Counted from the first letter of the stretch, positions 1,772 to 62,679 are shown. The stretch: DNA of 64,000 nucleotides from Orbicella franksi (GCA_964199315.1 OZ116710.1:19282001-19346000), one strand, 5' to 3'. Notes: a model not told the origin generated them from the letters alone. Translations and numbers: made by a program.

Positions 1772-2293
1772 ATGGCGCAAAAGGTAAAACGTATGCATCA
1801 TTTCAGCCGGCTAGATACCATAATGGAGGCAACACAGAGAGAAGAGAGCGACAGTGGTGATTGTTTTCATTTAGAGTTGTCGCCAAAGTCTTTAAATGGG
1901 CGGGATTCTGTTGATGTTAAAGACATACAGGATTTGGAAACTTCAAGACGAACTGGAATTGTTTTATCCTCCACGCGAATCTGCAGATCTGGACAAAGGA
2001 GACACGAGCGTGCCACTACACCGCGCAATGTTCCATCAGCTGAATGTCTTTTTAGATTTAAACAAGATCACATTTCTGAAACGACCCAAAAGGACAACAA
2101 AAACGCTCGCGACCTCACACAGGTACAAATGCTCTTTCCAGAATTCTTCTCTAGTGGAGCGAGTAGTTCTTTTATTCATCAACGGAACTGGCATGAAGCT
2201 AATCATCAAAATAACACGACATTATTAAATGAAAAGGTCAAAGAAGATCCATTCATTCGGCCTTGGTTGAACTTGTTTGGACCCTGTTCCTAA
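1772..2293 (+). CDS. Family member A1, 173 aa (RLDTIME ... MLFPEFF ... DPFIRPWLNLFG)
   Basis: ATG in aaaATGG context; uninterrupted ORF; all three family motifs present in order. Confidence 0.85.
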   Translation: MAQKVKRMHHFSRLDTIMEATQREESDSGDCFHLELSPKSLNGRDSVDVKDIQDLETSRRTGIVLSSTRICRSGQRRHERATTPRNVPSAECLFRFKQDHISETTQKDNKNARDLTQVQMLFPEFFSSGASSSFIHQRNWHEANHQNNTTLLNEKVKEDPFIRPWLNLFGPCS

Positions 2294-3715
2294 ACTTGAA
2301 CTTCTTTGCTGTTTGAGCACTATGAAACTTGTCAATTGTCTAATTAGGACTCAGTATAGGTATATCTCTCAGTAGTAAAGATGGCATAAACATTTTTGGA
2401 AACTAATTAATCATTGTGGTGTAATTTTTTAAACATTGAACACAACGAATAGGTAACCGTGAGCCAGAGTCTGCGAAAGAGATTTATCACTATTCCATGA
2501 AAGATGTGTTCTGATTCCAACCGTCCACCACGAACTATGTTTTATATACTACGTAAATGTACTTGCCGTGCTTTACTTGACAAAGGAACAGGGACTAAGG
2601 GTCGACATCCGTGTTCTCGAGGTCATGATTGTTACATATTTACTACTAATAAGTAATTTCACGTTTCTGTTACACATAGAAGTTAGTTTATACTCAGTCG
2701 ATACATGTCACGAGTAGACTTGTAACAAGGGAGTGAAAAAGATAGGCTGCTGTTGTTATGAACGCGTACTGGTTGACACGATAGTCTGATAGTTTATATC
2801 AGTAGATAATTAACTTGATATCGAGAATCAAAGGACACTGTAAATAATGAGTCTCTCGTTACCAAGATATTAACAGCACTGTAAATAAATGGAATATAAA
2901 TTTCGATACAATTAGCTTTGGAACGCAGACAAACGTTCGTTTGTTGTTTCACGTCGTCGGCGGTTTCTTTCCGTCGCTGAAAAATTCAAAGGTATCATAA
3001 ACTACCTACGCATTCCACCTTAAAAGGTACCTTGTAGTACCAAAATACGTCATCACAAAATTGCTGCTAATCCAAATTCCAACCAAGCATAATTGTAAAT
3101 TCGTTGTTTTAAAAATCCCTAATTGTAAACGGTTCTTTTTTCTTTTAAACCTCCTATTAATAAGAGCCTCCCTTCCTCTGAAAAGCCAATGATGGATAAT
3201 ACAAGAAAACGTGAGTTAATAGCTATACATATGGTTCACCGCAGCTTAATGTGGTCTACCCAAATTGTGGTTAATCCACGTTACCCGGGCACACCCCTAT
3301 ATGGTATGGTTTTTCAGACGTGTTAGTCTAAAATAGGATATCAGTTCAGCTCAAATCAGTTATGACTTTTATGCCGTTAAAATATTCGGCCCTGAAACAT
3401 AACCAGTTGACATTCATTCCAGTTTTGACATGAGCAAAACGAGAGTATAAGATCCATTTTACGCGCTGCCCTCCTCGTTATAGAGTGTTTATTGCTGGCA
3501 AGAAGAAGCACGCTCCAAGGCCTAATTTGAATGCCAATTAATTAGTTTATTAAAAAATGATTCTCAACAAGGATTTTAAGTATTATATTCAGCTTACTAT
3601 GCATTTTAGTTGTCTAGATGCACCAGATTAACAACAACCGTATTAATTATTCCTTCTAGGACTGTCAGAAATGGTTTGAGACATGACTGAATGACTGTTT
3701 TTGTTGAAAAAAGCT

Positions 3716-4213
3716 TCAATTTAAAAATGCAAAGGGCTTATAACATAAGTTCAACCAAGCTCGAACAAGAGGAACTTCGTTTTCCTTCCATGTTCGATTG
3801 CTGATCATTATAGTAGTTTCCTAGTCGACAGAGATCAATGCTCTTTTTCTGGGGAAAAAATTCGAGAAAAAGCATTTCAACTTCAGCTATCGCGCAGAGC
3901 TTTCGAGCGTCCTGTGTTATTTTGATAACAGCTTCGTCGGTCGTTTTCACTTTTTCGTTTCTGAATATCAGTGAAAATTTAGCTAACGTGTTGCGAGAGG
4001 TCAGTCAACTTTTTTGAATTCTTTCTGTTTAATCCTGTTGTGTATTCGAGTGGAGGGTAAAGTAATTTTATCTCTCCTTAGATTGTTATTTCCGCATTTC
4101 CAGAATCCTGCGCTGAAAATCAAAGCACTCGGCATTGTTTCTCTTTTCCACTCTTTCATCTCCATTATGGCTTCAAGGCGGCTGAAACGCAAACCTTTTG
4201 CTCTATTTGCCAT
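3716..4213 (-). pseudogene. Family member A2-psi, two compensating frameshifts
   Basis: The N-terminus RLEAIME and the C-terminal EVPLVRAWLNL share one frame (4213 to 3757 = 152 codons). The middle (TSRN...VEMLFLEFF) lies in a shifted frame. The main frame has stops at 4001-4003, 3983-3985 and 3821-3823. Confidence 0.75.
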
Positions 4214-4589
4214 TTAGCTTAGTCAACCGCTGTAAACACAAGTTCTTTTACTGAAAATCGGTAAGATTCTAATTCTTCCAAGACTGTCAATGCTGCTATA
4301 TCTCAGCCTAGCGTTCCTGTTTTTTTCTTCAAAAAATGATATACAACCCATTTTATGTTTGAAATAAATGTCACTTCCAATAGTAAAAATATAGTGGCTG
4401 ATTACACGAGGCGTCGCAGATGTTATTGGAATGAAGTCATCCAGTTGTTATGGTAGGGTTGAAGAACAGCTAAACAAGCTCATCAATATTTACTCTGCGG
4501 TAAACCGCGACCACTTTGCAGTTACGCACATGATCTGAAATTAAAAAATATCCAAAAAAAAAATACGCGCACTGATTGGGTAAAAACCG

Positions 4590-4755
4590 TGTTGTTATAA
4601 CTCGATAGAAACACAGAACTAGCACAAGTGTTGACGTATGATGGCGCGAGCAAAGAGATTTTCATTTTGATGATCAAAGTAAACAAGTTGTTTTCTTTTT
4701 TCGTGGCGTTATTTACTAAAAGAAACAGATAACATGTTCTCCGTGTTTCTATCTA
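4590..4755. repeat. Interspersed repeat, related to 47660-47810
   Basis: Shares ataactcgatagaaacac / gtgtttc(t/c)atcgagttat and aacatgt..ccgtgtttc motifs with 47690-47730. Confidence 0.5.
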
Positions 4756-10292: not shown

Positions 10293-10670
10293 CTAATCAC
10301 TTGAGCCACCTCCATACAAGTTCAACCATGACTGAATAAGTGGATCGTTGGGTGTTTGCTCAAGCTTGCCATTTCTATAAGTCTTGACCTTGTGGCTTTC
10401 CACAAAAACCGTGTTACTGCAACTTGTAAAAAACTCTGGAAAAAGTCGCTCCACTTGATTCTGCAGTTGCCCGTTGGCTGTATGAAGCTCATATCGATGG
10501 GTCTCGCGTGACGCGTGAAATGTAAACTGGCTCACTTTGCCTGTTAGGTGTGCCATATCACCTTCACATGTTTCGCCGCTTGTGCTCGCTTTTAAGGTCT
10601 TACTCGTGCTTTGTAAAATGGTCTTCATTCTGCTTATACCTAAGGTTTCAAATGAAAAATTATCTGCCAT
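10293..10670 (-). CDS. Family member A3, 125 aa (SRMKTILQ ... RLFPEFF ... DPLIQSWLNLYG)
   Basis: The track start at 10676 is TTG; the first ATG is at 10670. Central and C-terminal motifs are intact, with TATAAATA about 90 bp upstream. Confidence 0.85.
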   Translation of the reverse strand: MADNFSFETLGISRMKTILQSTSKTLKASTSGETCEGDMAHLTGKVSQFTFHASRETHRYELHTANGQLQNQVERLFPEFFTSCSNTVFVESHKVKTYRNGKLEQTPNDPLIQSWLNLYGGGSSD

Positions 10671-19659: not shown

Positions 19660-20100
19660 ATGCAAACTCCATCCAACAAATTACTTCACCTCGATCCTGA
19701 AACAGCTTGCGAGAAGACGTTATGTGTTTTCGAAGGAAGAGGATTGCTGCCTTTAAACCAAGATCTACAACCTGCCAATGATGGATTTTCTCGAAAGTTA
19801 CAAATTAACGAAACCACAATTTCAAGGAAATCCTCTCTGCTAAAAGAATTGCGGCCTTCGGCTGGAAAATTAAAATCAAGCAGTTCAGAAACACGAAAGG
19901 TTTCTTTTCGTGATGAACCTTTATATGAAACTGTAATTCCATCGTGTGATCACTCAAGAGCCCAGCTTCTCTTCCCGGACTTTTTTCCACGCGGGAAGGT
20001 GTTTTGCCATCACCAGGACTGTCTGATACCGCTTAACGTCCGAGCTGATCCAGTTCTTGTTTCTTGGTTACATCTCTTTGGACTGCAAATGACAAAATAA
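19660..20100 (+). CDS. Family member A4, 146 aa (RKVSF ... LLFPDFF ... DPVLVSWLHLFG)
   Basis: The track start is TTG; the first ATG is at 19660. Central and C-terminal motifs are intact. LxxIxE is absent and an RVxF-type motif is present. Confidence 0.85.
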   Translation: MQTPSNKLLHLDPETACEKTLCVFEGRGLLPLNQDLQPANDGFSRKLQINETTISRKSSLLKELRPSAGKLKSSSSETRKVSFRDEPLYETVIPSCDHSRAQLLFPDFFPRGKVFCHHQDCLIPLNVRADPVLVSWLHLFGLQMTK

Positions 20101-22718: not shown

Positions 22719-23261
22719 TTATCCATAAACCTGCGACCCAAACAAATCGAGCCACGACTGGACAAGCGGATCTTCGTAGTCTTTCTCACTGTACTTTTTA
22801 GACTCCTTGTGGCTAGTCTCTCTCTTATTACTACTGTTCTGCATTTCACCGTCCGTAAAAAACTCGGGGAAAAAGAGCTCAACCTCAGTAATGTCACGGC
22901 CTGTTTTGAGCGGAGATCTCATCAATGATTCACTTGAGCTACTAACAACTCCCGCAGGTGTTTCTGATACGCTTGCCATTTCCCGCCAATATGACGATGT
23001 GGCCGACAGTGTTTGTGGCGTTGCGTGGGAGCAAGATATTCTTCTTTTGAGGGGGCTGTATACAGCGGTTGAGTCACTTGAAGGTCTTCGGCCTGACTGC
23101 CCCGTGAAGGTTGTTGCATTATAGAAATCGTTAGAAATTTCTTCTTTCACGAGAGTTGAGTCTACCTCTAGATTACCATTTTCGTCTTGGTTTTCAGCTA
23201 TTTCTATAATTGTTTTGAGCCGTCTCGAGCGACCGTCGACTTTCTTCAGCATTTGTTTCAT
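22719..23261 (-). CDS. Family member A5, 180 aa (RRLKTIIE ... LFFPEFF ... DPLVQSWLDLFG)
   Basis: The track start is GTG; the first ATG is at 23261. All three motifs are present. Confidence 0.88.
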   Translation of the reverse strand: MKQMLKKVDGRSRRLKTIIEIAENQDENGNLEVDSTLVKEEISNDFYNATTFTGQSGRRPSSDSTAVYSPLKRRISCSHATPQTLSATSSYWREMASVSETPAGVVSSSSESLMRSPLKTGRDITEVELFFPEFFTDGEMQNSSNKRETSHKESKKYSEKDYEDPLVQSWLDLFGSQVYG

Positions 23262-28963: not shown

Positions 28964-29467
28964 ATGTGTCGATTTACTGGTTCAAAGCACAGAGACTATT
29001 CCCCGAGTCGTTCAACAACGATGTCTTACTGGCGTCGATTGCCCACAATTTATGAGGCTACTGATGTTGAAATGGCTGAAGAGACTGCAGCAGGCGAAAA
29101 GAGCGAACAGCAACATGTCATTGAAACAGAACAGCTGGGGGAGTACGGAATCATGTTGCCCCTTACCAAAAAGAACAAACGATCTAAACCAAGAAGGCAA
29201 AAAAATGCGAGATGCATTGTTCCTTCGTTTATTAAACCCGACTTTACAGAAGCAGATGCATCGCGGTCATTCCAGCAAATTCAAGATGAGTGGAGACACT
29301 TGTTAAGTACGCCATATTCTGACTTTTTCCCACAGGACATGAAATCGTCATTTATAGACAACAGCTTTACACTTTCAAGTAAGAAAACGCTCGGGAAAAT
29401 ACCAAACAAAGATGCTCAAGCTTGCAAGTTTAGCGAAATCGCTGCCTGGCTAGAGTTTTTTGGATGA
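28964..29467 (+). CDS. Family member A6, 167 aa (MCRF ... RRLPTIYE ... YSDFFP ... IAAWLEFFG*)
   Basis: The track start is TTG; the first ATG is at 28964. Motifs are present, with the central motif in variant form. Confidence 0.85.
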   Translation: MCRFTGSKHRDYSPSRSTTMSYWRRLPTIYEATDVEMAEETAAGEKSEQQHVIETEQLGEYGIMLPLTKKNKRSKPRRQKNARCIVPSFIKPDFTEADASRSFQQIQDEWRHLLSTPYSDFFPQDMKSSFIDNSFTLSSKKTLGKIPNKDAQACKFSEIAAWLEFFG

Positions 29468-30224
29468 TAAATCTTTACCAAGGTAGCAGTGAATAGAAAT
29501 CAAAATTAATAATTTATTGACATTGATGATTCTTCATTTTTCCTTCAGCAAGGAATTGACCTTTGAAGGCCTCATATGCTAGATAAACCGTTCAGGCCAA
29601 ACAAAATTGCCGCCTTGTTTACAAAGAAGAGACAGAAACTTGACACTGACTGAGTTGAATTAGTCAATCGCAGAAGGGTCTTGGGAAAAACAAATGAGTC
29701 GAGGCGTGTAGCAATTGTTTGACTTTGTTTGATGATTTAAATATCAACGCTGTGTATCAAAAGTACTGATGAAAAATACATAAAACAAAGGTTTCCCCTT
29801 CAAATCCACAAATTATGTATTTGTACATCAAGTTATGCTCTTAAAGTATTCAATTTTATCGATTTCATTAGAAATTTGGGGTCAAAATCGTCAATACTGG
29901 GCCAGACCGAAGATCGAGATTGAAACTTAACTACGTGATTGTTAATTTTAGAAACATTAATTTACTTTGTCATATCGAGCCTACTGTCCTTTATACTGTT
30001 TTATTAAATGTGTTGTAAACTAAGAATACATTTAAGTGGATGCCTCTTTCTATTGACTGCCTGAAACGTCAACCCTGTATTGCAATAGACTAGTTGTGGT
30101 GTTTCACCTCTGGTGCTTTCCGCAAAAGTTGTCAATTTTTTATCGGGTGCTGATGGAGTAATTGTATTTTAACATAACGGATACTTTTGTAAGAGAAAAG
30201 CGTTTAGAAATAAATGCTGTCGGA

Positions 30225-30385
30225 TTGAAGTTCGTCGATAGAGCACTTCATCGGTATCATTGAAGTCATGGGTTCGAATCACGTTCAATTCTGAATTTTT
30301 TTCAGGCCTTGTCTTTCATTGTTTAATATTTTTTTTCTAACTGCGTGCGATGATATTTCATATACTGAATATTTCATATTTTCAC
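30225..30385 (+). mobile_element. tRNA-derived SINE relic
   Basis: B-box GGTTCGAATC at 30271-30280, preceded by the A-box-like tagagcacttcatcggtatc and followed by ctgaattttttcagg. There is no intact tRNA cloverleaf. Confidence 0.55.

Positions 30386-31617: not shown

Positions 31618-31620
<3 letters not shown>

Positions 31621-31688
<68 letters not shown>
31621..31688. repeat. (TA)34 microsatellite
   Basis: Uninterrupted TA run, about 500 bp upstream of A7. Confidence 0.97.
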
Positions 31689-31692
<4 letters not shown>

Positions 31693-32091: not shown

Positions 32092-32099
32092 TATATAAA
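32092..32099 (+). promoter_or_regulatory. TATA box candidate for A7
   Basis: TATATAAA about 95 bp upstream of the ATG at 32189. Confidence 0.5.
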
Positions 32100-32188
32100 C
32101 ATGCGAATGCTCATTTCAGTATCTTATTAAGGTTTGTTTTTTTGAAGAGGCTGGGATCAGCGGGTGGAAAGCTCTCCTCAGATTCAGA

Positions 32189-34021: not shown

Positions 34022-35567
34022 TGCAAGTACTTCATACGCGGAAGAAATCTTGATGCAGGGATGAAAGTCCACTTATGCTTTGCATTTTTCCGTTAGCGTC
34101 TATTGATCAGCATTGCTTATTTCAGTAGTGCTTATGTGCCAAACTTAATTTTGGTTTTGAATGAACCATGGTGCATTATATTTTTCTTTGTGCGACTAAG
34201 GCAAGTCGATCCTTTTTCAAACCTTCAAAATCAAATGCGCCAACGTGATTGCCTCGGCAGACGCTTACTGGGCGTGTATGTTTTGTATCGAAACGTTTGG
34301 GCACGTTATTTTTCAGCTTTTTGTTAAGTTGAGATTATACAAAACATTGTCTAGGCTTTAAAAGGGAATTGCTTCGAGAAAAATCTTACATTTTATTAAC
34401 GCGTGTTACGGTGACAATACCTTTCAACTTTAAGTGGCGTAAACTCTTTCGATTATATCATACGATGCCACTTTACCGTTTACGCTCCTTAACTGCCGGC
34501 TTATATTATGTTCGACCAAGATAAAGGACCTGCTTGAAAACAGCCAAGGTTGATGTGGCTTTCACTCTTAATATTGTAATTTATATATTTATGTTCTATT
34601 TTTGAACTTAAGTTCTGTTTTTTTCTGTGATGCTATTAGCATTACGGCCCCGACTTGAGGGTGCAGATTTACATCACCATATATGGTAAAACTGAGTGTG
34701 TTTGTTGACGTATTAGGCCAAAACAAATCAGTCGGAAATAATACGTCGTGTACTTCCCTCTGCGGTGTCTCGGCCACTTTGCTAGTCAATATTGATGTTT
34801 GCGTTTGCTGCGCAGATGTTCAACCAGGGGTTATTAGAAATTCTAGTCACGTCTTCAGAGTTAAAAGGGTGTTGTTCTTGTAATCACCGAATCAGTAGGA
34901 CTGAAATTAAATTCTAAATAAATGTCTTTAGCCACGCTAGTCAGGGGTATATTCAATGTTGCTAGTAAAAGTAAGATAAGATAAAAACAAATTCAGCTTA
35001 CATTATGAAAAAGGTTGACTGACTTTTGCTAGCATGATATCTAAATAGACCTGTATTTTTGTTGGACAATGTGTCAGGCTTTTGATATACGATAATGCAT
35101 GTTGTCCTGTTGTGTAGGTTGCGCTATTAAGCCTTGGTCAGTGTTTTTTTTTTAAAGTTGGAAATGCCCGTGTTTGTTACTCCTGTTAGCTATTGTTACA
35201 AAAGACGCCGCTATCAAATAACATATGAAATGTTTATGCTAATATCGTATTGACGTCTTCTACCTTTGGGGTAATGTCAGTCTGATTAAATGACTAATAT
35301 CAATCTTACACTGTTCCAAAAACAACAATCATTTTGCTTGAATTATGTAGAGCCGCGCTCACTTTTCCGTTTCACTTGACGGTGTAACATTGATCAAATT
35401 TTACTGTTTATTCAAGTTGTTATCAGGGAATCTGCTTCTCACAGAAGTCATCAAGTACAGAACAACCCACAACTGAGGAAAGAGGTTTCACGCGAAAGAA
35501 GAGAATCTTTTGGATCTCGAATTGTTTCTAAGAAAAACAATTAAGCCAGAAAATTTGACTTACAATC

Positions 35568-35900
35568 ATGGAAAAATCTTCTTCTAAGAAAGTCTTCCGT
35601 GCCCATGTGGTGTCATCTAACATGTCTCGTGAAAAACGTAGACTAGCGGCAAAAGAGCCCACGCGAAAGAGCCGAACGGAGATGTTCTGGTGCAAAGGTT
35701 CGAAAATACTTCCAGATTTTTTCCCGCCTGACAAGCTAAAGAGGAAAACATTAAATCATCAAACGATCCTTTCAGTTGTCAAAAGGATTAGCATAGTGAA
35801 ACAGTACTCCTGGGAAAATGAAGAAAGCGGAGAGTCTGAAGCGCAAACGATCGCTAAATCGTGGATGATGTACTTTGGCTTTGGCGCTTGTGAAACGTGA
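35568..35900 (+). CDS. Family member B1, 110 aa (KRRLA ... ILPDFFP ... YSWENEE ... SWMMYFG)
   Basis: ATG start, intact ORF, clearly paralogous to B2-B7. Confidence 0.85.
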   Translation: MEKSSSKKVFRAHVVSSNMSREKRRLAAKEPTRKSRTEMFWCKGSKILPDFFPPDKLKRKTLNHQTILSVVKRISIVKQYSWENEESGESEAQTIAKSWMMYFGFGACET

Positions 35901-36689
35901 TTTTCTCATTTAAAACATTGTGTTGTACGAGACGTCTTCCATAAATACAATTCTATCTAATTATTTTTTAAAAAAAGGACGAATCTTTTTCGTTGTCTTA
36001 ATGGAACCATAATTGCAATTATATATCACGTCTACAACATTCTTATTGTTGTGAAAATGCTGGTAATTCAAGCTTGTCTTGAATAATGAAAGACTAAAAC
36101 TTTCTAAAACAATGATTTGGAAGTATTGATTTATTCCATATCCATTTGCCCGCAGTTATGCAAATGACTATAAAATAATTTTATTTTGATTTACCGTTTA
36201 GAAAGATTAAACAAAACACTGTCCATTGTACGTTTACTCTTAACACTACACTTGAGGGTAAAGTCAAAAACAAAACTTGCTACGACATAACACAAACTCT
36301 TTAAAGGCGTTTACCAGCAAACTTTCAAACCTGTCACTATTGGTTTATTGCCTCTCTTTCACACTCCAACAGGAGGAAACGGTCAATGGTTGTGGTAATC
36401 TGACGGTTCAATCCGTTTGAGCTGAAAACCTTGCTTAGAGACAACAGTGTCGCTAATTTGTTAACATATACATTATGATTCGACCCATCATCATCATTAT
36501 CGAATTAAGTATTACAAAACTACGTTTTTAGAATTAAAATAAATTGAAATATAATTGAAATTAAAACATAATTCGTATTTCATTTTATTTCAATATTTCA
36601 TAACTTTAAGCTTCGTAACAACTTGTTAAAAACACACAGTTCGGATGTAGACGTGCTCTTCTGGTCGTGTAAGTTAAAATCATGATTTG

Positions 36690-36910
36690 CATGCATACCA
36701 GTTTAACAATGTCCTTGGTCAGGGCGCAAACCCTCAGCATATTTATCAGGTTGTCGTAAAAATATGACGGTGTTCATTTATACTCCTGGTCGAGTGAGGC
36801 ATTGTTCAGTGAATCATGCACAGAAACACAAATACGAAAGATCAGTCCTGATTTCGATCTCGTACCTCTAGATCTAAGGTTCGAAGTCCGGCATACTACT
36901 AGGCCATACC
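36690..36910 (-). mobile_element. Degenerate tRNA-derived SINE with CORE-like body
   Basis: The minus strand starts with tRNA-like tggcctagtagtatgccggacttcgaac...gagatcgaaatc. The body contains catttatactcctggtcgagtgaggca on +, which resembles CORE-type SINE domains as I recall them. Confidence 0.45.
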
Positions 36911-37525
36911 TGTAATGGGCACAATTTATCTATTAGCAAGAAAGGCCTGAAATACATGACTCGTATTGATCGTCGCTTGTTAGATTGTAAATAGCAACCT
37001 CACGCTTTAAGAGAAAAAAAAAACGAATCATCAATTCATGTATTTGTTGGGACTCTTTGCTCTAAATTTCTTTTGACAATATGTGATATCAGTAACATAG
37101 CAATGTTATGCGTGCCCACTTGTGAATTTCGTGTGAAGGTGGGTGCAATCTGTAAGAATTTATTATATCAACAACGGATAATGACGAGATCAAACCGGGA
37201 GCATCAAACAATCGTTATCCTGCCAGTTCACACATCTTCTCGCTTTTCGCCAATGATAATGATTTGACCATGCTCTTTTCTAATGCATGCAGCACTAACG
37301 ACGAGGAGACAAACAAACAGACAGACGTACCCGTTAACTGTTTTGCGTCTTGTGTCTGTTCTTAAGGACGTGTGCTGGGTGTATACGTCACTGGTTTGCT
37401 GTCAATTTCTGGGTATGATGCTGATTCTATTTATAGTTTTGAATCACCTCAAGTAAACAGCGCCGGGTAGTAGAAATATCAGACGGTAACCGATTGTCAG
37501 CAACCAAACTTGGCATGCGAAAAGG

Positions 37526-37888
37526 ATGATAATCACCAGAAAATACGTTTTAAAAGACAGCCTGGAAATTCCTTCGACACAGAAAGTCTTTCAAGGATAT
37601 ATGATGCCATGTAACAGTTCTCGTAAAAAACGCAGATTGAGCAAGTCTGAACGGACACGGCAGCGCCAAGAGATGTTATGTCGAAAAGGTTCGAGAATGC
37701 TACCAGATTTTTTCCCGCTTGATGAAGAAAAGAAAGAAACCTTGAATCATCAAATCATTCTTTTAACTAAACAGATTAGCACAGTGAAGCGGTACTCCTG
37801 GGAAAATGAGGAAAGCGGAGAGTCTGAAGCGAAAACGATCGCTGAATCGTGGATGAGGTACTTTGGCCTCGAGACCTGTGATTCTTGA
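37526..37888 (+). CDS. Family member B2, 120 aa
   Basis: Intact ORF. The ancestral ATG reads CTG (37562-37564) and a new in-frame ATG lies 12 codons upstream. Confidence 0.75.
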   Translation: MIITRKYVLKDSLEIPSTQKVFQGYMMPCNSSRKKRRLSKSERTRQRQEMLCRKGSRMLPDFFPLDEEKKETLNHQIILLTKQISTVKRYSWENEESGESEAKTIAESWMRYFGLETCDS

Positions 37889-39433
37889 TGTTCTTTTAAG
37901 GACTGTGTTTGTTACCATGCCTGAAAGAAATTCGTTTGACAAAGAATGCGCATTGTCAGTTTTACGCAATATCAAAGCAGTTCATGTTAATCTCTAAGAC
38001 GAATTATAATGAGCGTGGTTTCATCTTGAGATTAGTTGAAAATGTTGCATAATAGACTCTATCAATTATTTTACCTTGCATGCCCGTGCTACTATTTGCA
38101 AACGTATCTGCTAATTGGATTCTTGTTTTTAGTTCCGTTTTTTCCCAAAACACGACTAATTGTAAACAATTTTGTTTCTTGGGTGAAACTAAACAGATTT
38201 TGACATCTTTCAATGTCACAGAAAACCTCACACACGTAGCTAAAAATAATTGTTTTGAAGCAACATCAGAACATTTATCTAATTTCGCCCTATAGGATAG
38301 CGCTGCAAGTATATTCATTAAGAAAGTAAACGATTCTGCTTCAGACAGTTGAGGTGTTGTAAATAATCATTAGGGAATCAGAGTTTGAGACTTGGTTTCG
38401 TATCACCGATGTAAAGCGAACATAAAAATCTCAAATAAACTGCTTGTAAGTAAATATCGAGAATCCTCAATCGGAGACAGAACCGAAGCTTCGGATTTTC
38501 TTCCTATTAACGGAGAGACCCGAAGTAAGTCATTGCGACTTCAATTTTTTTGGAACAATCTTGCAGTCAGATCAAATTACGCAAGATGGAAAAGAGAAAA
38601 TAAATTACGTAAGAAGGAACACTTCAAGACAGACAGAAGCTTCCCTTGAATCCATGTGTTTAGACAGTATGGAACTATTACCACAACATAACTCTAAAAA
38701 ACATTTTCGACAAAAAATCTCCTAAGTCGTCTAAATCTGAGCTTTTTGACAAATCATAGAATGCAGAAACCCGAATAGGCACAAAAGACCCGGGAGATGT
38801 CTTGAAAAGGTCCGAAAAGCTCTCCAGGTTTTTTTCCCTTATGACACACCAAGTAAAAGGAAGGCATTAGATCCGGCAAAGCACAGATAGCCAAGGGTCC
38901 ATAAAGCCCGAATGATGACTTAATCATGGAAGATGTACTTTTTGCGTCGGGGCCGGTGATACTTGGTGCTCTGTTATGTAGAAATAACCGCATACCATTC
39001 GTGTTGACGAATGACCGTCCAGTAGCACCTCAATGCTTTTCAGAGACTGGACAGGATACTTTCACGTTTTAAACAAAACCGTCGACTGAGGAATTTAGAA
39101 TGTATGCTTGTAACTTGGTTACATGAATCATTTAAGACGAGGAGATACAAACAGAATCACCCGCCAATTGTTTTAGTTCCTTTGTTGTCTGTTCTCAAGG
39201 ACGTGTGCTGTGTGTGTACGTCACTGGTTTGTTTTCAATTTCTGGGTATGATGCTGCTTCTATTTATAGTTTTGTATCACTTTAAGTAAACAGCGCCAAG
39301 TAGAAGAAATATCAGACAGTAACCGATTGTCAACAACCAAACTTGCCAAGCAAAAAGGAAGATAATCACCAGAAAATACGTTGTAAAAGACAGCATGGAA
39401 ATCCTTTCGACATAGAAAGTCTTTCAAGGATAT

Positions 39434-39718
39434 ATGATGCCATGTAACAGCTCTCGTAAAAAACGCAGATTGAGCAAATCTGAACGGACACGACAGCGCC
39501 AAGAGATGTTATGTCGAAAAGGTTCGAGAATGCTACCAGATTTTTTCCCACTTGATGAACAAAAGAAAGAAACCTTGAATCATCAAGCCATTCTTTCAAT
39601 TAAATCGATTAAAATAATGAAGAAATACTCTTGGGAAAATGAGGAAAGCGGAGAGTCTGAAGCGCAAACGATCACTGAATCGTGGATGATGTACTTTGGT
39701 GCCGAGGCCGGCCTGTGA
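39434..39718 (+). CDS. Family member B3, 94 aa, downstream of an in-frame 6-codon uORF (ATG 39395, TAG 39413-39415)
   Basis: The ORF from MMPC is intact. The ancestral start is followed by TAG at codon 7, so it could be a pseudogene. Confidence 0.55.
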   Translation: MMPCNSSRKKRRLSKSERTRQRQEMLCRKGSRMLPDFFPLDEQKKETLNHQAILSIKSIKIMKKYSWENEESGESEAQTITESWMMYFGAEAGL

Positions 39719-39991
39719 TTTTTTATGTTCTTTGGGGGACTGTGTGTGTTACCATGCCTAAGAAAAATTCGTTTGACAAAGAATGTGCGGTGTTTTTACT
39801 CAATATCAAAGCAGTTCATGTTAATATCTAAGACCTATTTTTAATGTAGTTTCAGCTTGAGATTAGTTGAAAAGGTTACATAATAGGGTGTATCAATTTT
39901 CTAACTAACATATCCGTGCTGCTATTTGAAAACGTATCTGCTAATTGATTTTTGTTTTTAGTTGCGTTTTTCCCCAAAACACGATAAACCT

Positions 39992-40042
39992 ATCGCTGAA
40001 TCGTGGATGATGTACTTTGGCTCCGAGGCCTATGATTCTTGA
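39992..40042 (+). pseudogene. Duplicated 3'-terminal fragment of a B gene (IAESWMMYFGSEAYDS*)
   Basis: The last 16 codons, the stop and the 3' flank are repeated about 320 bp after the B3 stop. Confidence 0.85.
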
Positions 40043-41115
40043 TGTTCTTTTAGAGATTTGTATGTTACCATGCCTGAACGAAATTCGTTTGACAGAGGAT
40101 GTACATTGTCTTTTACATAATAGGCTGTATCAATTTTCTAACTTGCATGTGCGTGCTGCTATTTGCAAACGTATCTGCTAATTGGATTCTTGTTTTTAGT
40201 TCCGTTTTTCTCCAAAACACGACTTATTGTAAACAATCTTGTTTCTTTGGCGGAACCATATAGATTTTGACATCTTTCAGTGTCACAGAAAACCTCACAC
40301 ACTCAGCTGAAAATAATTGTTGGGAAACAACAGCAAAACATTCATCTAATTTCGCCCTATAGAATTGCACTTCAGGCATGGTTATTAAAAACAAGGAAAC
40401 GATTCTTCTTCAAACAGTTGAGGTGTATGCAAATAGTCTTTAAGGCATCAGATTTTGAGACGTGATTTCCGTATCATCAATGTAAAGCGAACATGGAAGT
40501 CTCAAATACACGATTATTTACACAGATCGCTTGTAAGTAAATATCGAGAATCGTCAGAGACATAACCGAACTTGGCTTCGGATTTTCTTCCTTTTAATGG
40601 AGAGGCCCTTTTGGTGAACTTCTTTTCAAAACTAAGTCATAGCCAGTTTAAATTTTTGAGCAATCTTGCAGTCAGATTAAAAGATCAACGAAGATCCGAA
40701 AATTACGTAAGATAGAACACTTCAAGACAGACGAAAGCTTCCCTTGAATGCATGTTTTTAGACACTATGAATCTATTACCACAACATTACTCTAAAAAAA
40801 AACATTTTCGACAAAGCATCTCCCATGTCGTCTAACTGAGCTCTTTTGACAAACTTCAGAATGCACAAACCCGGAAGATGTCTTGTGAAAGGTTCAAAAA
40901 GCTTTGCAGTTTTTTTCCTTTATGACACACCCAGTAAAAGGGAGGCATTAGATCCGGCAAAGCATAGATAACGAAGTGTCCACAAAGCCCGAATGATGAC
41001 TTAATCGTGGAAGATGTAGTCTTGGCTTCGAGGCCGGTGATACTTGGTGCTCTGTTATGTAGAAGTAACCGCATACTATTCGTGTTGACAATTTCTGGGT
41101 ATGATGCTGCTTCTA

Positions 41116-41614: not shown

Positions 41615-41941
41615 ATGGAAATCCCTTCCACACCGAAAATCTTTGAAGGATATATGATGCCATGTAACAACTCTCGTAAAAAACGCAGGTTGAGCAAATC
41701 TGAACGGACACGACAGCGCCAAGAGATGTTATGTCGAAAAGGTTCCAGAATGCTACCAGATTTTTTCCCGCTTGATGAGCAAAAGAAAGAAACCTTGAAT
41801 CAGCAAATCATTCTTTCAACCAAAGCGATTAACATAGTGAAGAAGTACTCTTGGGAAAATGAGGAAAGCGGAGAGTCTGAAGCTCAAACGATCGCTAAAT
41901 CGTGGATGATATACTTTGGCGCCGAGGCCTGTGATTCTTGA
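41615..41941 (+). CDS. Family member B4, 108 aa, intact
   Basis: ATG start MEIPSTPK, no early stop, motifs intact. Confidence 0.88.
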   Translation: MEIPSTPKIFEGYMMPCNNSRKKRRLSKSERTRQRQEMLCRKGSRMLPDFFPLDEQKKETLNQQIILSTKAINIVKKYSWENEESGESEAQTIAKSWMIYFGAEACDS

Positions 41942-42206
41942 TGTTCTTTTAGGGACTGTGTGTGTTACCATACCTGAGAAAAATTTGTTTGACAAAGAAT
42001 TTGTAATGTTTTTACTCAATATCAAAGCAGTTCATGTTAATCTCTAAGACGAATTATAATGTAGTTTCAGCTTGGGATTAGTTGAAAAGGTTACATAATA
42101 GGGTGTATCAATTTTCTAACTAACATTTTCGTGCTGCTATTTGGAAACGTATCCGCTAATTGATTCTTGTTTTTAGTTGCGTTTTTCCCCAAAACACGAT
42201 AAACGT

Positions 42207-42257
42207 ATCGCTGAATCGTGGATGATGTACTTTGGCTCCGAGGCCTATGATTCTTGA
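42207..42257 (+). pseudogene. Duplicated 3'-terminal fragment (IAESWMMYFGSEAYDS*)
   Basis: Same structure as 39992-40042, located after B4. Confidence 0.85.
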
Positions 42258-43707
42258 TGTTCTTTTAGAGATTTGTATGTTACCATGTCTGAACGAAATT
42301 CGTTTGACAGAGGATGTACATTGTCTTTTACAAAATAGGCTGTATCAATTTTCTAACTTGCATGTGCGTGCTGCTATTTGCAAACGTATCTGCTAATTGG
42401 ATTCTTGTTTTTAGTTCCGTTTTTCTCCAAAACACGACTTATTGTAAACAATCTTGTTTCTTTGGCGGAACCACACAGATTTTGATATCTTTCAGTGTCA
42501 CAGAAAACCTCACACACTTAGCTGAAAATAGTTGTTGGGAAACAACAGCAAAACATTCACCTAATTTCGCCCTATAGGATTGCACTTTAAGCATGGTTAT
42601 TAAAAACAAGGAAACGATTCTTCTTCAAACAGTTGAGGTGTATGCAAATAGTCATTTAGGCATAAGATTTTGAGACGTGATTTCCGTATCATCAATGTAA
42701 AGCGAACACGGAAGTCTCAAATACACGATTAGTTACAAAGATCGCTTGTAAGTAAATATCGAAAATCGTCAGAGACATAACCGAACTTGGCTTCGGATTT
42801 TCTTCCTTTTAATGGAGAGGCCCTTTTGGTGAACTTCTTTTCAAAACTAAGTCATAGCCAGTTTAAATTTTTGAGCAATCTTGCAGTCAGATTAAAATAT
42901 CAACGAAGATCCGAAAATTACGAAGGATAGAACACTTCAAGACAGACGAAAGCTTCCCTTGAAACCATGTTTTTAGACACTATGAAAGTATTACCACAAC
43001 AGAACTTTAAAAAAAAAAAGCATTTTCGACAAAACATCTCCCGTGTCGTCTAAAAGTGAGCTTTTTTGACAAACTACAGAATGCACAAACCCGGGAGATG
43101 TCTTGTGAAAGGTTCAAACGCTTTGCATTTTTTTTTCCTTTATGATACACCCAGTAAAAGGAAGGTATTAGATCCGGCAAAGCATAGATAACCAAGGGTC
43201 TACAAAGCCCGAATGATGATTCGGAAAGATGTGGAAGATGCAGTTTTTGCGTCGGGGCCGGTGATACTTGGTGCTCTGTTATGTAGAAATAACCGCATAC
43301 CATTCGTGTTGACGAATGACCGTCCAGTAGCACCTCAATGCTTTTCAGAGACTGGACAGGATACTTTCAAGTTTTAAAGAAAACCGTAGACTAAGGAATT
43401 TATAATGTATGCTTGTTACTTGGTAACATGAATCATTTAAGACGAGGAGATACAAACAGAACCCCCCCCCCCACCCCCAATTGTTTCAGTTCCTTTGTTG
43501 TCTGTTCTCAAGGACGTGTGCTGTGTGTGTACGTCACTGGTTTGTTTTCAATTTCTGGGTATGATGCTGCTTCTATTTATAGTTTTGTATCACTTTACGT
43601 AAACAGCGCCGAGTAGAAGAAATATCAGACAGTAACCGATTGTCAACAACCAAACTTGCCAAGCAAAAAGGAAGATAAACACCAGAAAATACAGTCTAAA
43701 AGACAGC

Positions 43708-44036
43708 ATGGAAATCCTTTCGACATAGAAAGTCTTTCAAGGATATATGATACCATGTAACAGCACTCGTACGAACCGCAGATTGAGCAAATCTGAACGG
43801 ACACGGCAGCGCCAGGGGATGTTATGTCGAAAAGGTTCCAGAATGCTACCAGATTTTTTCCCGCTTGATGAACAAAAGAAAGAAACCTTGAATCATCAAA
43901 TCATTCTTTCAACCTGAAACGGATTAAAATAGTGAAGAAATACTCTTGGGAAAATGAGGAAAGCGGAGAGTCTGAAACTCAAACGATCGCTGAATCGTAG
44001 ATGATGTACTTGGGCGTCGAGACCTGTGATTCTTGA
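43708..44036 (+). pseudogene. Family member B5-psi
   Basis: TAG at 43726-43728; a 2-bp TG insertion creating TGA at 43915-43917; the conserved Trp codon reads TAG at 43998-44000; terminal FG has become LG. Confidence 0.92.
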
Positions 44037-44301
44037 TGCTCTTTGGGGGACTGTGTGTGTTACCATGCCTGAGAAAAATTCGTTTGACAAAGAATTTGTA
44101 ATGTTTTTACTCAGTATCTAAGCAGTTTATGTTAATCTCTAGGACGAATTATAATGTAGTTTCAGCTTGAGATTAGTTGAAAAGGTTACATAATAGGGTG
44201 TATCAATTTTCTAACTAACATGTCCGTGCTGCTATTTGAAAACGTATTTGCTAATTGATTTTTGTTTTTAGTTGCGTTTTCAGCCAAAACACGATAAGCC
44301 T

Positions 44302-44352
44302 ATCGCTGAATCGTGGATGATGTACTGTGGCCTTGAAGCCTATGATTCTTGA
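44302..44352 (+). pseudogene. Duplicated 3'-terminal fragment (IAESWMMYCGLEAYDS*)
   Basis: Third copy of the internal duplication, located after B5. Confidence 0.85.
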
Positions 44353-45111
44353 TGTTCTTTTAGAGATTTGTATGTTACCATGTCTGAACGAAATTCGTTT
44401 GACAGAGGATGTACATTGTTTTTATTCAATATCAAAGCAGTTCATGTTAATCTCTAAGACGAATTACAGTGTCCTTTCATCTTGAAGATTAGTTGAAAAG
44501 TTACATAATAGACTACATCAATTTTCTGACTTGCATGCCCGTGCTGCTATTTGCAAATGTATTTGCTAATTGATTCTTGTTTCTCGTCTCGTTTTTCCCC
44601 AAAACACGACTAATTGTAAACAATTTTGTTTCTTGGGCGGATCTAAACACATTGCGACATTTTTCAGTGCCACAGAAAACCTCACACACGTAGCTGAAAG
44701 TAATTGTTTTGAAACAACATCAAAACATTCATCTAATTTCGCCCTATATGATTGCATTACATGCATGTTTATTGAAATTAAGGAAACGATTCTTCTTCAA
44801 ACAGTTGAGGTGTATGTAGATAGTCATTAAGGCATCAGATCTTGAGAAGTGTTTCCGTATCATCAATGTAAAGCGAATATGGAAGTCTCAAATAAACGAT
44901 TATTTACAAAGACCGCTTGTAAGTAAATATCGAGAATCCTCAGATAGTTTTGAATCACTTTCAGTAAACAGCGCCGAGTAGAAGAAATGTCAGACGGGAA
45001 CCGATTGTCAGCAACTGAACTTGCTAAGCAAAAAGGAAGATAACCACCAGAAAATACGTTGTAAAAGACAGCATGGAAATCCCTTCGACATAGAAAGTCT
45101 TTCAAGGATAT

Positions 45112-45399
45112 ATGATGCCATGTAACAGCTCTCGTACAAAACGCAGATTGAGCAAATCTGAATGGACACGGCAGCGCCAGGGGATGTTATGTCGAAAAGG
45201 TTCCAGAATGCTACCGGATTTTTTCCCGTTTGATGAACAAAAGAAAGAAACCTTGAATCATGAGATCATTCTTTCAACCAAAGCGATTAACATAGTGAAG
45301 AAATACTCTTGGGAAAATGAGGAAAGCAGAGAGTCTGACGCTCAAACGATCGCTGAATCGTGGATGATGTACTTTGGTCTCGAGGCCAGTGATTCTTGA
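45112..45399 (+). CDS. Family member B6, 95 aa, downstream of an in-frame uORF (ATG 45073, TAG 45091-45093)
   Basis: The ORF from MMPC is intact. The upstream region has lost about 800 bp relative to sister units, so it may be a pseudogene. Confidence 0.5.
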   Translation: MMPCNSSRTKRRLSKSEWTRQRQGMLCRKGSRMLPDFFPFDEQKKETLNHEIILSTKAINIVKKYSWENEESRESDAQTIAESWMMYFGLEASDS

Positions 45400-48896: not shown

Positions 48897-49238
48897 ATGG
48901 AAATATCTTCAACACATAACGTCTGCTATGGTCATATACTTTCATCTGACAGCTCACGTGGCAAACGTAGATTAAGCAAATCTGAGCGGACACGGAGAAG
49001 TCGAGAGATGTTTTGTAGAAAAGGTTCTAAAATACTTCCAGATTTTTTCCCACCTGACACACCAGCTGAGAGAACTCTTGATGATCAAAGTAAACTTTCT
49101 GTCAAGAGCACAAGCATGATGAAGCAGTATTCCTGGGAAAATGAAGAAAATGGACAATCTGAAGCTCAGACGATCGCTGAATCATGGATGATATACTTTG
49201 GACTTGAGGCCCGTGATAGTCTGCTGATTAGAAACTGA
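48897..49238 (+). CDS. Family member B7, 113 aa
   Basis: The track start is GTG; the first ATG at 48897 (MEISST) aligns with the B1/B4 starts. Motifs are intact. Confidence 0.87.
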   Translation: MEISSTHNVCYGHILSSDSSRGKRRLSKSERTRRSREMFCRKGSKILPDFFPPDTPAERTLDDQSKLSVKSTSMMKQYSWENEENGQSEAQTIAESWMIYFGLEARDSLLIRN

Positions 49239-51711: not shown

Positions 51712-51816
51712 GACGAATAGTATTTCTGGGAAAATGATGAAAACCAGGAGACTGAAGATCAAAAGATCGCTTGATCGTGGGTGATGGATTTACTTCGGTC
51801 TCGCGAGAAGCTCTAA
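51712..51816 (+). pseudogene. Family member B8 relic (3' end only)
   Basis: YFWENDENQETEDQKIA*SW..YFGL aligns with B7 YSWENEENGQSEAQTIAESWMIYFGL. There is TGA at 51772-51774 and a 4-nt excess before YFG. Confidence 0.8.
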
Positions 51817-55378: not shown

Positions 55379-55849
55379 ATGAAGCAGAATGCTCCATTTC
55401 TACCGAGATTAAAAATGACGCGACATCTGAGCACGATTGTGGAGGGAAGAGAAGATAATGATGAGTTTGGCGATGTTGGTGGACTGTTTGGCAGACCTGG
55501 TGAAAATAGACACAGGAGATTCAGTCGAAGGGTGTACTCATGTAGTGACATTACAGTAGCTGCGAACAAAAAACCCGATAATTTAATTCTTCCTCCGTTG
55601 GCAAATCCTGAGAAAAACGAGAGACAATCTTTACATGGCAATGGAAAAGGCCCACGAGGTAACCTTAAAGTGGTAGACTGTACTGCTAATATATTCCCAG
55701 ACTTTAGACCGCCTGATAGGACTCAGAGTATCATGGACTTTGACTCTAAGGTTTCAAGACTTTCCACGCGGTCAAAATCAAACGATGAACACAGTTTTTC
55801 TCAAAACAAGGAGAACATTGTTGCCTCGTGGCTTCAATTCTTTGGATGA
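55379..55849 (+). CDS. Family member A8, 156 aa (RHLSTIVE ... IFPDFR ... IVASWLQFFG*)
   Basis: The track start is GTG; the first ATG is at 55379. All three motifs are present. Confidence 0.87.
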   Translation: MKQNAPFLPRLKMTRHLSTIVEGREDNDEFGDVGGLFGRPGENRHRRFSRRVYSCSDITVAANKKPDNLILPPLANPEKNERQSLHGNGKGPRGNLKVVDCTANIFPDFRPPDRTQSIMDFDSKVSRLSTRSKSNDEHSFSQNKENIVASWLQFFG

Positions 55850-58053: not shown

Positions 58054-58108
58054 GCAAATAAATAAAAAAGTAAATAAATAAATAAGCAAGTAAATAAATA
58101 TAATAAAT
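58016..58108. repeat. (AAAT)n microsatellite
   Basis: Imperfect AAAT run. Confidence 0.92.
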
Positions 58109-60265: not shown

Positions 60266-60547
60266 TTATTTCATCCCAAATTCACATTTGTACCAGCCTT
60301 TAATGTCACGTGGGGTATTTTCGGTTGCTGCCTCGATGGTCCGAGTCATTTTTTCATGATGCACGTTCTTATTACATATGTCACACGAGCGAAAAAACTC
60401 GGGAAAAATAGCCATTGCATCCCTTAGATCATCGCTATTGAAATTGTCTTGTCTGGGATTACTGAAACTCGCTGATGTTTTTGAGAAGAAAGCGGACGTA
60501 GAAAATACAGCGTCGGGTGACGAAAAAGCCTTGGTCCAAGTGCTCAT
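60266..60547 (-). CDS. Family member C1, 93 aa (AIFPEFF ... DIKGWYKCEFGMK*)
   Basis: ATG start, central motif intact, W-x4-FG C-terminus, TATATAA at 60637-60631. Confidence 0.8.
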   Translation of the reverse strand: MSTWTKAFSSPDAVFSTSAFFSKTSASFSNPRQDNFNSDDLRDAMAIFPEFFRSCDICNKNVHHEKMTRTIEAATENTPRDIKGWYKCEFGMK

Positions 60548-61699
60548 GATTTCTCTCTTATTCTTGATCTTGATAGTTTAGCTCCTTTATCGGAGTAAAA
60601 GTGACAACTGACTTACGAGTGCTAATGGTGTTATATATTCCTTTTTGTAAATGCTCGTCCTTCAGTCACTGTTGTCTTTATCGAGTGTTGCTCTGCTAAA
60701 AATAGCATGGATATTGGCAATTATTGGATCCATTAATTAAAGCACGTATCATTCATAGTTGTAAACAGATGTGGTAAGTGAGAGACGTTTTCGTTCGTTT
60801 TGGTCTCTATTGATTACTAATTCCAATGTTGACAATCAGCAAACTAGTTACGTGCTTGTCCGTCAGTGTATCTGACAATTTTCCGGCACGTATGCATGGA
60901 CGCCAGTTGTGTTAGTTTAAAATCGTGAGAGCACAAGCCTGATTCTAATACTAAGTACAGCATCGAAAAAAAAGGAACGATTACAAATCTTTTCACCAGC
61001 GAATGTACGCCATACTTTAGGTAGACAATTTAAATCTTACAGGTTTTCAATGAGTTGTTTGTCCGGTCGATTTTTGAATTATAAAATCAAATTTTATCAA
61101 TTCGAATGCAAAACAACACGCTCGTAATTCTAATCGGCACTTATCACTGTAATTATCTCACCACAGGATATTGTTTGCTGGATCACGAACTCCCTGTCAC
61201 TTTTGTTTGTGATATGATCGTATGATAGTACAATGGAAGGTGTACGTGGAGAAAGTCCCGTAATATATTCAATTGCAATTGTAAAAATCTAATCACTCAG
61301 TGTGTTGAGCTGCGAAATACAAATCACTCATTTGTAATTAGGATAAGTCACGTCTAACAGTTTTCAAATATATAAAACTACCAGTAAGGGATCAGATTGT
61401 TTGAGTGTTTTTGGTTCTCGTTAGGTTTATTTCAGGTGTACAGATTTCCTTTCTGAGAAAACCAGCGTTTCGAAATTCGATATGTCCGGAATCTATTTCC
61501 GTGAGCCACAGAATTCACGGCAGTGCTTTTGTTGAATTACAAAGACCTCCTGTTATAGCATTGTTCACTCTGTATAGGTAGCCATACAGTTTCGAGTTCA
61601 ATTTGGAATTAATTTGCACGAGTTGGTGGAGCAACACAAAATCTGTATTTTGTATACAAGTGAAGCTAGATCCAAGTAATATATCAAACAAGACAGACC

Positions 61700-61960
61700 G
61701 TGTTTGACCACATTTCCAAACACCGAGAAGAGATTAAAATACGTCAAGCAGCGGAGTCTTTTTGACGAACTTCGAGGTGTTTGGAAATGTGGTCAAACAC
61801 TGTCTTGAGTGCTTGGTATCTCTTCTCAATCCAAATTCAAACCAAGGGAAAAAAATGGAGAAATCAAATCGTAAAAATCTATGCTGATTAAGATCAGACA
61901 TCCAAACGGTCATGATTTCCTTTATTTAAACCTAATGAATTATTAATGGCTCATTTGAGA
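61700..61960. repeat. Interspersed repeat with perfect 25-bp inverted repeat (61700-61724 / 61776-61800)
   Basis: gtgtttgaccacatttccaaacacc ... ggtgtttggaaatgtggtcaaacac. Confidence 0.75.
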
Positions 61961-62295
61961 AGGACAGGACTAGTGAAGTAGGATTTGGCCCAGCAGGGAT
62001 CAAACAATCAAATAATCAGGCCACAGAGATCAACATCAGGAGGGAGTTGTTCTTATACTAGAGAAGAGAGGGGGTGGGGGGGGGGGGGGTAAAGCACTTT
62101 TGGAATGTGACCCAGTGAGGTTAGGAATCATAATTATAACAGCTTCCATTTTTTATCACCAGACGTATAAAAATAGCACCACTTGCATTACGTTTTGTAC
62201 TCTTTTACTTCCGTTTTACCCGATAATATGATAACAACATTACATTTACCCGAAATAGGAAACGTCAATGTGACTAAAATCTCATGACTTTAAAA

Positions 62296-62679
62296 TTACA
62301 TTCCATACTCGTTCTTAACCCAGTCAACTATGTCTTTAGAATTCTTGAGGTGCCCCGCGATTTTACTATCTACTGTACTGTTAGATAGTGAACCAGTTAC
62401 GGCGTTTATTGTCCCCTTTGTTGCGACACATAAAGGTCGGTTCCAGTCCTTTTTGTGAGTATTTTGCAAATGAAATTCTGGAAAGAGTTTCAAAGCCATA
62501 TAAAAGTCTTTGTCTTTTGAGGGCAGATTGTGGGAGTTTTGCTTGTCGTCTAAGCTTTGCAAACTGGTAGTTATGATGCCTGAGGAAGCTGGGAGGTAAG
62601 TATCGTCTTGTGCTTCATTGGCTACCGTTCTCAAAGCACGTGATCTTTCCTGTATTCCACTTTCACCCCGCTTGTGCAT
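62296..62679 (-). CDS. Family member C2, 127 aa (RALRTVANE ... KLFPEFH ... DIVDWVKNEYGM*)
   Basis: ATG start, variant motifs in the family order. Confidence 0.8.
   Translation of the reverse strand: MHKRGESGIQERSRALRTVANEAQDDTYLPASSGIITTSLQSLDDKQNSHNLPSKDKDFYMALKLFPEFHLQNTHKKDWNRPLCVATKGTINAVTGSLSNSTVDSKIAGHLKNSKDIVDWVKNEYGM

Follow-up and report, generated by a model that had tools for sequence, protein, structure and literature searches.

We describe a cluster of expressed, selected protein-coding genes in a 64,000 nt stretch of the genome of the coral Orbicella franksi (GCA_964199315.1 OZ116710.1:19282001-19346000), hereafter the window, which encodes small proteins built from three conserved interaction modules and fast-evolving linkers rich in Ser, Thr, Lys and Arg, with conservation concentrated in the modules. 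The modules are an N-terminal L-x-T-I-x-E motif flanked by a basic patch and acidic residues (module 1), a central [LFY]P[DE]FF(P) motif (module 2) and a C-terminal segment, predicted to form an amphipathic helix, that ends in W[LM]xΦ[FY]G and often coincides with the exact C-terminus (module 3). The window has a G+C content of 37% and contains no runs of N. Six-frame motif scans and a hidden Markov model (HMM) built from the members identified 15 open reading frames (ORFs) of 93-180 aa, all of which carry a [LFY]P[DE]FF-like motif followed by a W[LM]xΦ[FY]G-like motif lying 0-12 residues from the stop; about 6 relics lie beside them. The full set of 15 is recovered by a loose motif-pair pattern, and 12 by a strict one. 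Alignment and best-hit classification of 234 homologues divided the family into five subfamily types (A, B, C, D and E), and members are named here by type and number. An earlier note on this DNA had proposed a cluster of some 19 loci whose shared, ordered motifs could not plausibly be due to chance. Its locus count is essentially right and differs from ours in how scraps are counted, and the argument from chance was borne out by 200 first-order Markov shuffles of the window, in which no motif-pair ORF arose.

Evidence for expressed and selected genes

The window is collinear with three loci of one related species (L010, L012 and L014) at 82-87% nucleotide identity, intergenic DNA included. 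Across a neutral divergence of about 18% the orthologous ORF was intact in all seven pairs tested, with indels in frame, and the ratio of nonsynonymous to synonymous substitution rates (dN/dS, Nei-Gojobori method) was well below 1 in each: 0.29 for A1 (against L012), 0.54 for C1 (against L010), 0.39 for C2, 0.17 for B1, 0.22 for D, and 0.41 and 0.27 for E1 and B7, respectively (both against L014). Values among the B paralogues were 0.2-0.5. E2 was the sole member for which no orthologue was found in L014. Conservation was higher in the motifs than outside them: among 17 divergent A-type proteins, the three motifs had column identities of 0.93, 0.83 and 0.82, and the remaining columns 0.46. Oculina also retains the cluster, under the locus tags G013333, G013334 and G013341.

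Polyadenylated (polyA) RNA was compared with window positions 32001-38000, where coverage was limited to C2, B1 and B2 and depth was zero in intergenic bins. C2 was covered by an RNA contig at 32145-32731 (depth 25) with reads of library X24 on top, B1 by RNA contigs at 35246-36153 with X24 reads at a depth of about 3, and B2 by X1 RNA words reaching a depth of 254 at 37601-37800; no read joints were found inside these three ORFs. The loose end of an X1 RNA contig matches B3 at 39700-39729, and 0.87-0.89 of the words sampled from E2 were present in several small polyA RNA libraries of different studies. Contigs over A1 (L004-L008) and C1 (L009, 28602-29619), which come from presumed RNA runs (the SRR311689xx series and SRR6255881), are collinear with the genome. 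Raw reads on 32001-38000 numbered 30 in X24, and 0 and 1 in X22 and X23, which are deep polyA libraries under the same species label; this gap reflects either expression that depends strongly on tissue or stage, or two taxa sharing one label. Expression of the cluster is condition-dependent or low, because X22 and X23 are almost without reads while X24 agrees with the contigs.

The X1 contig over C2 extends upstream by 27 letters identical to 29453-29479, comprising the last codons and stop of C1, followed by a shared AAG. The genome reads AAG|GTAGCAG at 29480-29489 and TTTTTTTGAAG|AGG at 32147/32148, and from these letters and the contig we assign a canonical GT-AG intron on the + strand at 29483-32147, which begins 15 nt past the C1 stop and ends 41 nt short of the C2 ATG. 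The sister-species locus L010 has kept both the donor and the acceptor site. The overhang of 30 letters equals k-1 of the assembler (k=31 assumed), a length that suggests junction-spanning words together with a branch at the C1 end where the unspliced form is also present (L009). At least part of C2 expression therefore comes from a transcript that has C2 as its second ORF and whose upstream exon includes the final part, perhaps the whole, of C1; the splice is documented by one contig. Neither the exact 27-mer (0 matches) nor a relaxed pattern (47 matches, none related to the window) recovered the junction from JGI metagenome and metatranscriptome contigs, and the contigs looked up for C1 and C2 orthologues were genomic rather than transcripts. 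The earlier description of the genes as intronless holds for the coding sequences but not for C2 as a transcript, in which the intron in the 5′ untranslated region connects it to the 3′ end of C1.

It is highly improbable that the ORFs encode no functional protein and are chance ORFs, transposon cargo or non-coding transcripts. Such an origin would suit the small size of the ORFs, their low expression, their lack of annotation in most genomes and the pseudogenes in the array, but it cannot be reconciled with the empty shuffles, the low dN/dS and in-frame indels of all seven orthologue pairs, the collinear synteny of the sister species and the retention of the cluster in Oculina. It is refuted for most members and remains only for E2 and the short forms B3 and B6. 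That these loci are genes, as first proposed from their motifs, is upheld by the intact orthologues, the dN/dS range of 0.17-0.54, the polyA RNA peaks that fall on the ORFs and the presence of E2 in RNA runs; transcription was seen for C2, B1 and B2 in polyA RNA.

Predicted disorder and the conserved modules

Across the family the proteins are about 95-200 aa long and rich in S, K, R, E and T, with grand average of hydropathy (GRAVY) values of -0.4 to -1.0 and basic N-termini. No signal peptide or transmembrane segment was detected (maximum 19-residue Kyte-Doolittle hydropathy ≤1.1), and a secreted small protein or neuropeptide precursor, in which the C-terminal Gly would serve as amide donor, was ruled out for want of a signal peptide. 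AlphaFold models computed with family alignments had a predicted local distance difference test score (pLDDT) of 59.5 and a predicted template modelling score (pTM) of 0.23 for A1, and 59.8 and 0.20, respectively, for B1. Peaks of confidence in A1 are confined to residues 11-20, 111-130 and 151-170, with helices beside FPEFF and over the C-terminal motif, while residues 1-110 have no secondary structure and pLDDT is 53-72 around LxxIxE; the only helix of B1 spans residues 91-102. For the C-terminal module the models give an amphipathic helix (pLDDT 82-86) capped by FG. The members are soluble disordered chains that bear short recognition elements, in agreement with the earlier suggestion of mostly disordered proteins. 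The linkers had also been called unalignable, which is so between subfamilies but not within orthogroups (84-91% identity) nor in type B, which is conserved along its whole length.

Of the 124 homologues that reach 140 aa or more, 110 carry the L-x-T-I-x-E motif, at a median start of residue 17, with an average of 5.1 K/R/H in the 15 residues upstream, an average of 1.5 D/E/S/T at P7-9 downstream, and D or S at P2 in most members. The docking consensus of the B56 regulatory subunit of protein phosphatase 2A (PP2A) is [LMFI]xx[ILV]xE, in which L and I are preferred at P1 and P4 and E is invariant at P6 (PMC10970375). Affinity is enhanced by acidic or phosphorylated residues at P2 and P7-9 and by a basic patch within about 15 aa on the N-terminal side, and the validated motif of Cyk4 is LSTIDESGS (PMC10970375, PMC7108865). 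Five window members have an intact LxTIxE that conforms to this consensus, namely A1 (LDTIME), A3 (LKTIIE), C1 (LPTIYE), C2 (LPTIFE) and D (LSTIVE), whereas the B-type proteins, A4, A2, E1 and E2 do not conform. The enhancing features, an upstream basic patch and the P2 and P7-9 residues, are present, and in the A1 model the motif lies in a predicted disordered region, as expected of an accessible motif of this class. In its disordered L-x-x-I-x-E, the acidic residues after it and the basic patch before it, the coral family resembles the PP2A-B56 LxxIxE proteins BubR1 (KARD), RepoMan, KIF4A and Cyk4/RacGAP1, and LSTIVE of type D closely resembles LSTIDE of Cyk4. It differs from them in having no homology to them, in its tiny proteins, in a motif placed near residue 17 with a nearly invariant Thr at position 3, and in the absence of the motif from two thirds of the window paralogues. 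The manner of its loss can be read in several of these: B-type proteins of all species start ME[IK]SS, inside the former motif, with a stop codon at motif position 1 in B1 and an ORF beginning at the next ME, and A4 starts at the motif position. Because 10 of the 15 window members are without LxxIxE, it is not the family's common function. Modules 2 and 3 persist in the motif-less members, on which purifying selection still acts, and the common function therefore lies in these two modules.

We tentatively prefer to read the family as disordered adaptors or regulators that dock a phosphatase and engage a second partner through their aromatic modules; the "adaptor or regulator" role, also named in the earlier note, is suggested solely by the match to the PP2A-B56 motif. 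Module 1 would dock B56, and modules 2 and 3 would together bind the second partner. The full-length members A1, A3, C1, C2 and D could then be phosphatase adaptors, competitors for the B56 pocket, or substrates that direct their own dephosphorylation, while the B array and A4, which start at or inside the lost motif, would bind the partner through modules 2 and 3 without recruiting PP2A, and basophilic kinase sites would supply a phospho-switch. Several points weigh against this proposal. Most window members (10/15) have no LxxIxE; the motif is a short pattern from which B56 docking is predicted by sequence alone; modules 2 and 3 fit no known motif class by their conservation pattern, and no partner is named; expression is low in two of the three polyA libraries of the same species label; and the taxonomic restriction of the family is drawn from sequence searches, whose sensitivity for disordered proteins is limited.

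R[RK]x[ST] sites are enriched in the family (9 of 16 window members, against 3.6 expected), and RKGS directly precedes LPDFF in every B-type protein. These conserved basophilic kinase sites (RRxS, and RKGS before LPDFF) suggest a phospho-switch, and they also suit a reading that ranks next after the adaptor proposal and that we consider possible but doubtful, in which the proteins are phospho-regulated substrates or effectors. LxxIxE would bring PP2A-B56 to their own RRxS-type sites and modules 2 and 3 would form an effector surface that is switched by phosphorylation, such as a hydrophobic helix filling a groove in a transcription or signalling protein. The predicted C-terminal amphipathic helix and the continued purifying selection on motif-less paralogues are likewise in keeping with it; nothing separates it from the adaptor reading, and it too names no partner.

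Invariance in modules 2 and 3 falls on the fourth residue of F-P-D-F-F and, in the C-terminal motif, on the Trp, the Gly and the Phe at W+4; this pattern bears on two further interpretations drawn from known motif classes. RxLFG is the cyclin-binding motif of the Cip/Kip inhibitors and p107, which in p27 ends as RNLFGP. The A-type end WLNLFG(P) is similar, and a candidate phosphatase-docking motif lies in the same chain; like the Cip/Kip inhibitors of cyclin-dependent kinases (CDKs), the coral proteins are small, disordered and equipped with an xLFG hydrophobic element. It is nevertheless unlikely that they are cyclin-CDK docking regulators, whether cell-cycle inhibitors or substrates, acting through a C-terminal xLFG. 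All subfamilies have Leu or Met where the motif is defined by an Arg/Lys two residues ahead of the Leu, the invariant Trp would be left unexplained, the motif is C-terminal rather than N-terminal, no Pfam CDI match was obtained in 40 members, and CDK sites are not enriched ([ST]Px[KR], 49 against 44 expected; [ST]P is depleted). Under the second interpretation they would be accessory proteins of endocytosis, with FxDxF, DPF and WxxF as their binding motifs for the AP-2 alpha-appendage. FPDFF is literally an FxDxF, WLEF, WLQF and WLKF are instances of WxxF, and A1 has a DPF; these motif classes, and a C-terminal WxxF in NECAP, have been described for alpha-ear ligands (PMC3794858), which are likewise disordered and bear aromatic short linear motifs (SLiMs), one of them at the extreme C-terminus. 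We disfavour this reading and give it very little probability, as the conservation pattern misses the positions that the ear pockets require: FxDxF positions 1 and 5 vary (L and Y; R, K, Q and H) while the fourth is invariant, Asp is replaced by Glu in the largest subfamily (type A), the conserved Phe is at W+4 and is followed by an invariant Gly, and W+3 is Leu in type A. The RVxF motif of protein phosphatase 1 (PP1) was rejected as a family feature, being not enriched (35 against 56 expected). A4 has an instance of this PP1-type motif, RKVSF (19894-19908), which is kept in its orthologue P0128 and is absent from P0154 (52% identical).

Subfamilies, individual members and duplication history

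Type A proteins (A1-A4) combine LFPEFF with DPLIxSWLNLFG. A1 (1772-2293, + strand) encodes 173 aa with a basic N-terminus, LDTIME, LFPEFF and WLNLFG, and has a product, P0001, that is 99% identical. Four Logan contigs (L004-L007), obtained from different runs of a single study, start exactly at window position 457 and run collinearly through A1 for 2.2-4.2 kb; this position is a transcript boundary or the edge of an assembly-breaking repeat. On the - strand at 3719-4213 is an A-type relic that is broken over three frames, with hmmsearch fragments at profile positions 1-55, 81-128 and 130-146. A2 (10293-10670, - strand; 125 aa) has a degenerate N-terminal motif, MKTILQ, followed by LFPEFF and WLNLYG, and its orthologues are P0146 and P0150. 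A4 (19660-20100, + strand; 146 aa) begins MQTPSN in place of LxxIxE and continues with RKVSF, LFPDFFP and WLHLFG; its orthologue P0128 is 86% identical. A3 (22719-23261, - strand; 180 aa), with LKTIIE, FFPEFF and WLDLFG, has orthologues P0126, P0136, P0138, P0141 and P0143.

Type C (C1 and C2) is recognised by an MCRF start, YxDFFP and an end at AAWLxFFG-COOH. C1 (28964-29467, + strand; 167 aa) carries LPTIYE and YSDFFP and ends in WLEFFG-COOH, and C2 (32189-32674, + strand; 161 aa) carries LPTIFE and YPDFFP and ends in WLKFFG-COOH. All C-type proteins begin Met-Cys-Arg, mostly as MCRF (window 28964-28975 and 32189-32200; P0123, P0124, P0142, P0149 and P0170), and this start is kept in C-type orthologues down to about 36% identity; the conserved Cys-2 could serve as an N-degron or be acylated. 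The single D-type gene (55379-55849, + strand; 156 aa) is characterised by PFLPRLKMTRH-LSTIVE and IFPDFRPP, contains RRFSRRV, and ends in ASWLQFFG-COOH. C- and D-type proteins end exactly at FFG-COOH (window 29465-29467, 32672-32674 and 55847-55849), and 46 of 183 family proteins have nothing after the terminal Gly. It is unusual for a Gly to be conserved at the C-terminus, where it might act as a C-end recognition signal.

Type B (B1-B7, all on the + strand) shares ILPDFFPP, KQYSWENEE and AESWMMYFG. B1 (35568-35900; 110 aa), which is without LxxIxE and has ILPDFFPP, KQYSWENEE and WMMYFG, is 78% identical to P0063 of Desmophyllum. B2 to B6 form a tandem array of 2.1-2.2 kb units that are 78-88% identical to one another and are recent tandem copies. 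B2 (37526-37888; 120 aa) is the first unit, followed by B3 (39434-39718; 94 aa), B4 (41615-41941; 108 aa, with P0042 95% identical), the B5 pseudogene (43675-44033) and B6 (45112-45399; 95 aa). The frame of B5 changes near 43854-43914, its tblastn pieces lie in two frames, and hmmsearch returned pieces at 43729-43914 and 43872-43997. In each B2-B6 unit the 3′ end of the ORF recurs as a 140-nt copy some 270 nt past the stop, as found by comparing the segment at 37832-37971 with those at 39986-40122, 42201-42337 and 44302-44440. This intra-unit duplication is the source of three 50-nt scraps of the C-terminal motif on the + strand (39986-40039, 42201-42254 and 44296-44349). X24 RNA reads contain a paralogue-type version of the 140-nt segment. 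Beyond the array are B7 (48897-49238; 113 aa) and a B-type C-terminal relic (51721-51813, + strand) with tblastn identity of 47-59% over 21-32 aa.

Type E (E1 and E2) has FPEFF/H and WxKxE[FY]G. E1 (60266-60547, - strand; 93 aa), with IFPEFF and WYKCEFG, has an intact orthologous ORF in L014, and E2 (62296-62679, - strand; 127 aa), with LFPEFH and WVKNEYG, is the weakest member. Other corals have separate orthologues of most types, which places the division into subfamilies before the origin of these species; together with the B2-B6 array, this substantiates the view that local duplication diversified the family. A further subfamily in other corals, not found in the window, is marked by LPTISEE, ALFPDFFPR, MEQIFSG and a distinct conserved C-terminus, EYWKxYQLSF. 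Its members are P0153, P0162 (Oculina G013341), P0213, P0219, P0226, which shares a contig with the A1 orthologue, and P0232, and it probably belongs to the same cluster past the window edge.

Distribution and significance of the family

A profile search of 1.84 billion representative proteins gave 68 matches at E≤0.001, all small proteins except two long repeat proteins, and all 44 inspected matches to small proteins share the family architecture. Of the long repeat proteins, P0131 was found by inspection to be a false positive and P0165 was not inspected. The only named matches are "hypothetical protein" entries of Oculina patagonica (the three locus tags given above), Desmophyllum pertusum and Pocillopora damicornis, so that the expectation that annotation would miss such genes fails in these three species and holds for most genomes, where they are unannotated. 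Coral assemblies and transcript contigs contain many homologues, and the RNA and DNA runs that contain the sequence are labelled coral; the family is apparently restricted to Scleractinia.

Comparison with characterised families returned nothing. No Pfam model scored above its curated cut-off in 10 window proteins, no Pfam family was common to more than two of 40 members even when weak matches were included, and 10 other ORFs of the window matched nothing in Pfam. The family profile had no match among PDB sequences at E≤10, and the best ESM Atlas scores for A1, D and A3 (0.70-0.71) were in the chance range. A literature search on the motifs, the locus tags and coral-restricted disordered families found nothing, and the family remains, as the earlier note judged it, an unrecognised one. 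The Bearded/E(spl)m4 family and INKA are likewise small, domain-less and encoded by clustered paralogues with few ordered motifs (Atlas feature scores 0.63-0.70), but these scores are in the chance range, there is no common motif and they belong to other phyla. What is new is the family itself, with two motifs outside known classes; lineage-restricted regulators that bear SLiMs are precedented as a kind.

Taken further, and more speculatively than the adaptor proposal itself, the cluster may constitute a coral-specific phosphatase-targeting system in which the full-length members connect PP2A-B56 with a single partner able to recognise FP[DE]FF together with W[LM]xΦ[FY]G, A4 and the tandemly amplified B array are built-in decoys that tune it, and at least one pair, C1 and C2, is produced from a single spliced two-ORF transcript. 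If so, the two invariant modules would represent a new class of SLiM and a new binding pocket. The C1-C2 transcript itself bears on the expression of small ORFs in cnidarians. Stony corals are of critical ecological importance, with much of their gene complement classed as "hypothetical", and this conserved cluster offers a concrete and cheap question: whether the proteins bind B56, and which partner takes the aromatic modules. Should they show no binding, the family would be an ordinary taxon-restricted family of disordered proteins. If the docking is real, the family would add a lineage-specific layer to PP2A regulation and provide a natural experiment in the birth, duplication and motif-stripping of SLiM-only proteins.

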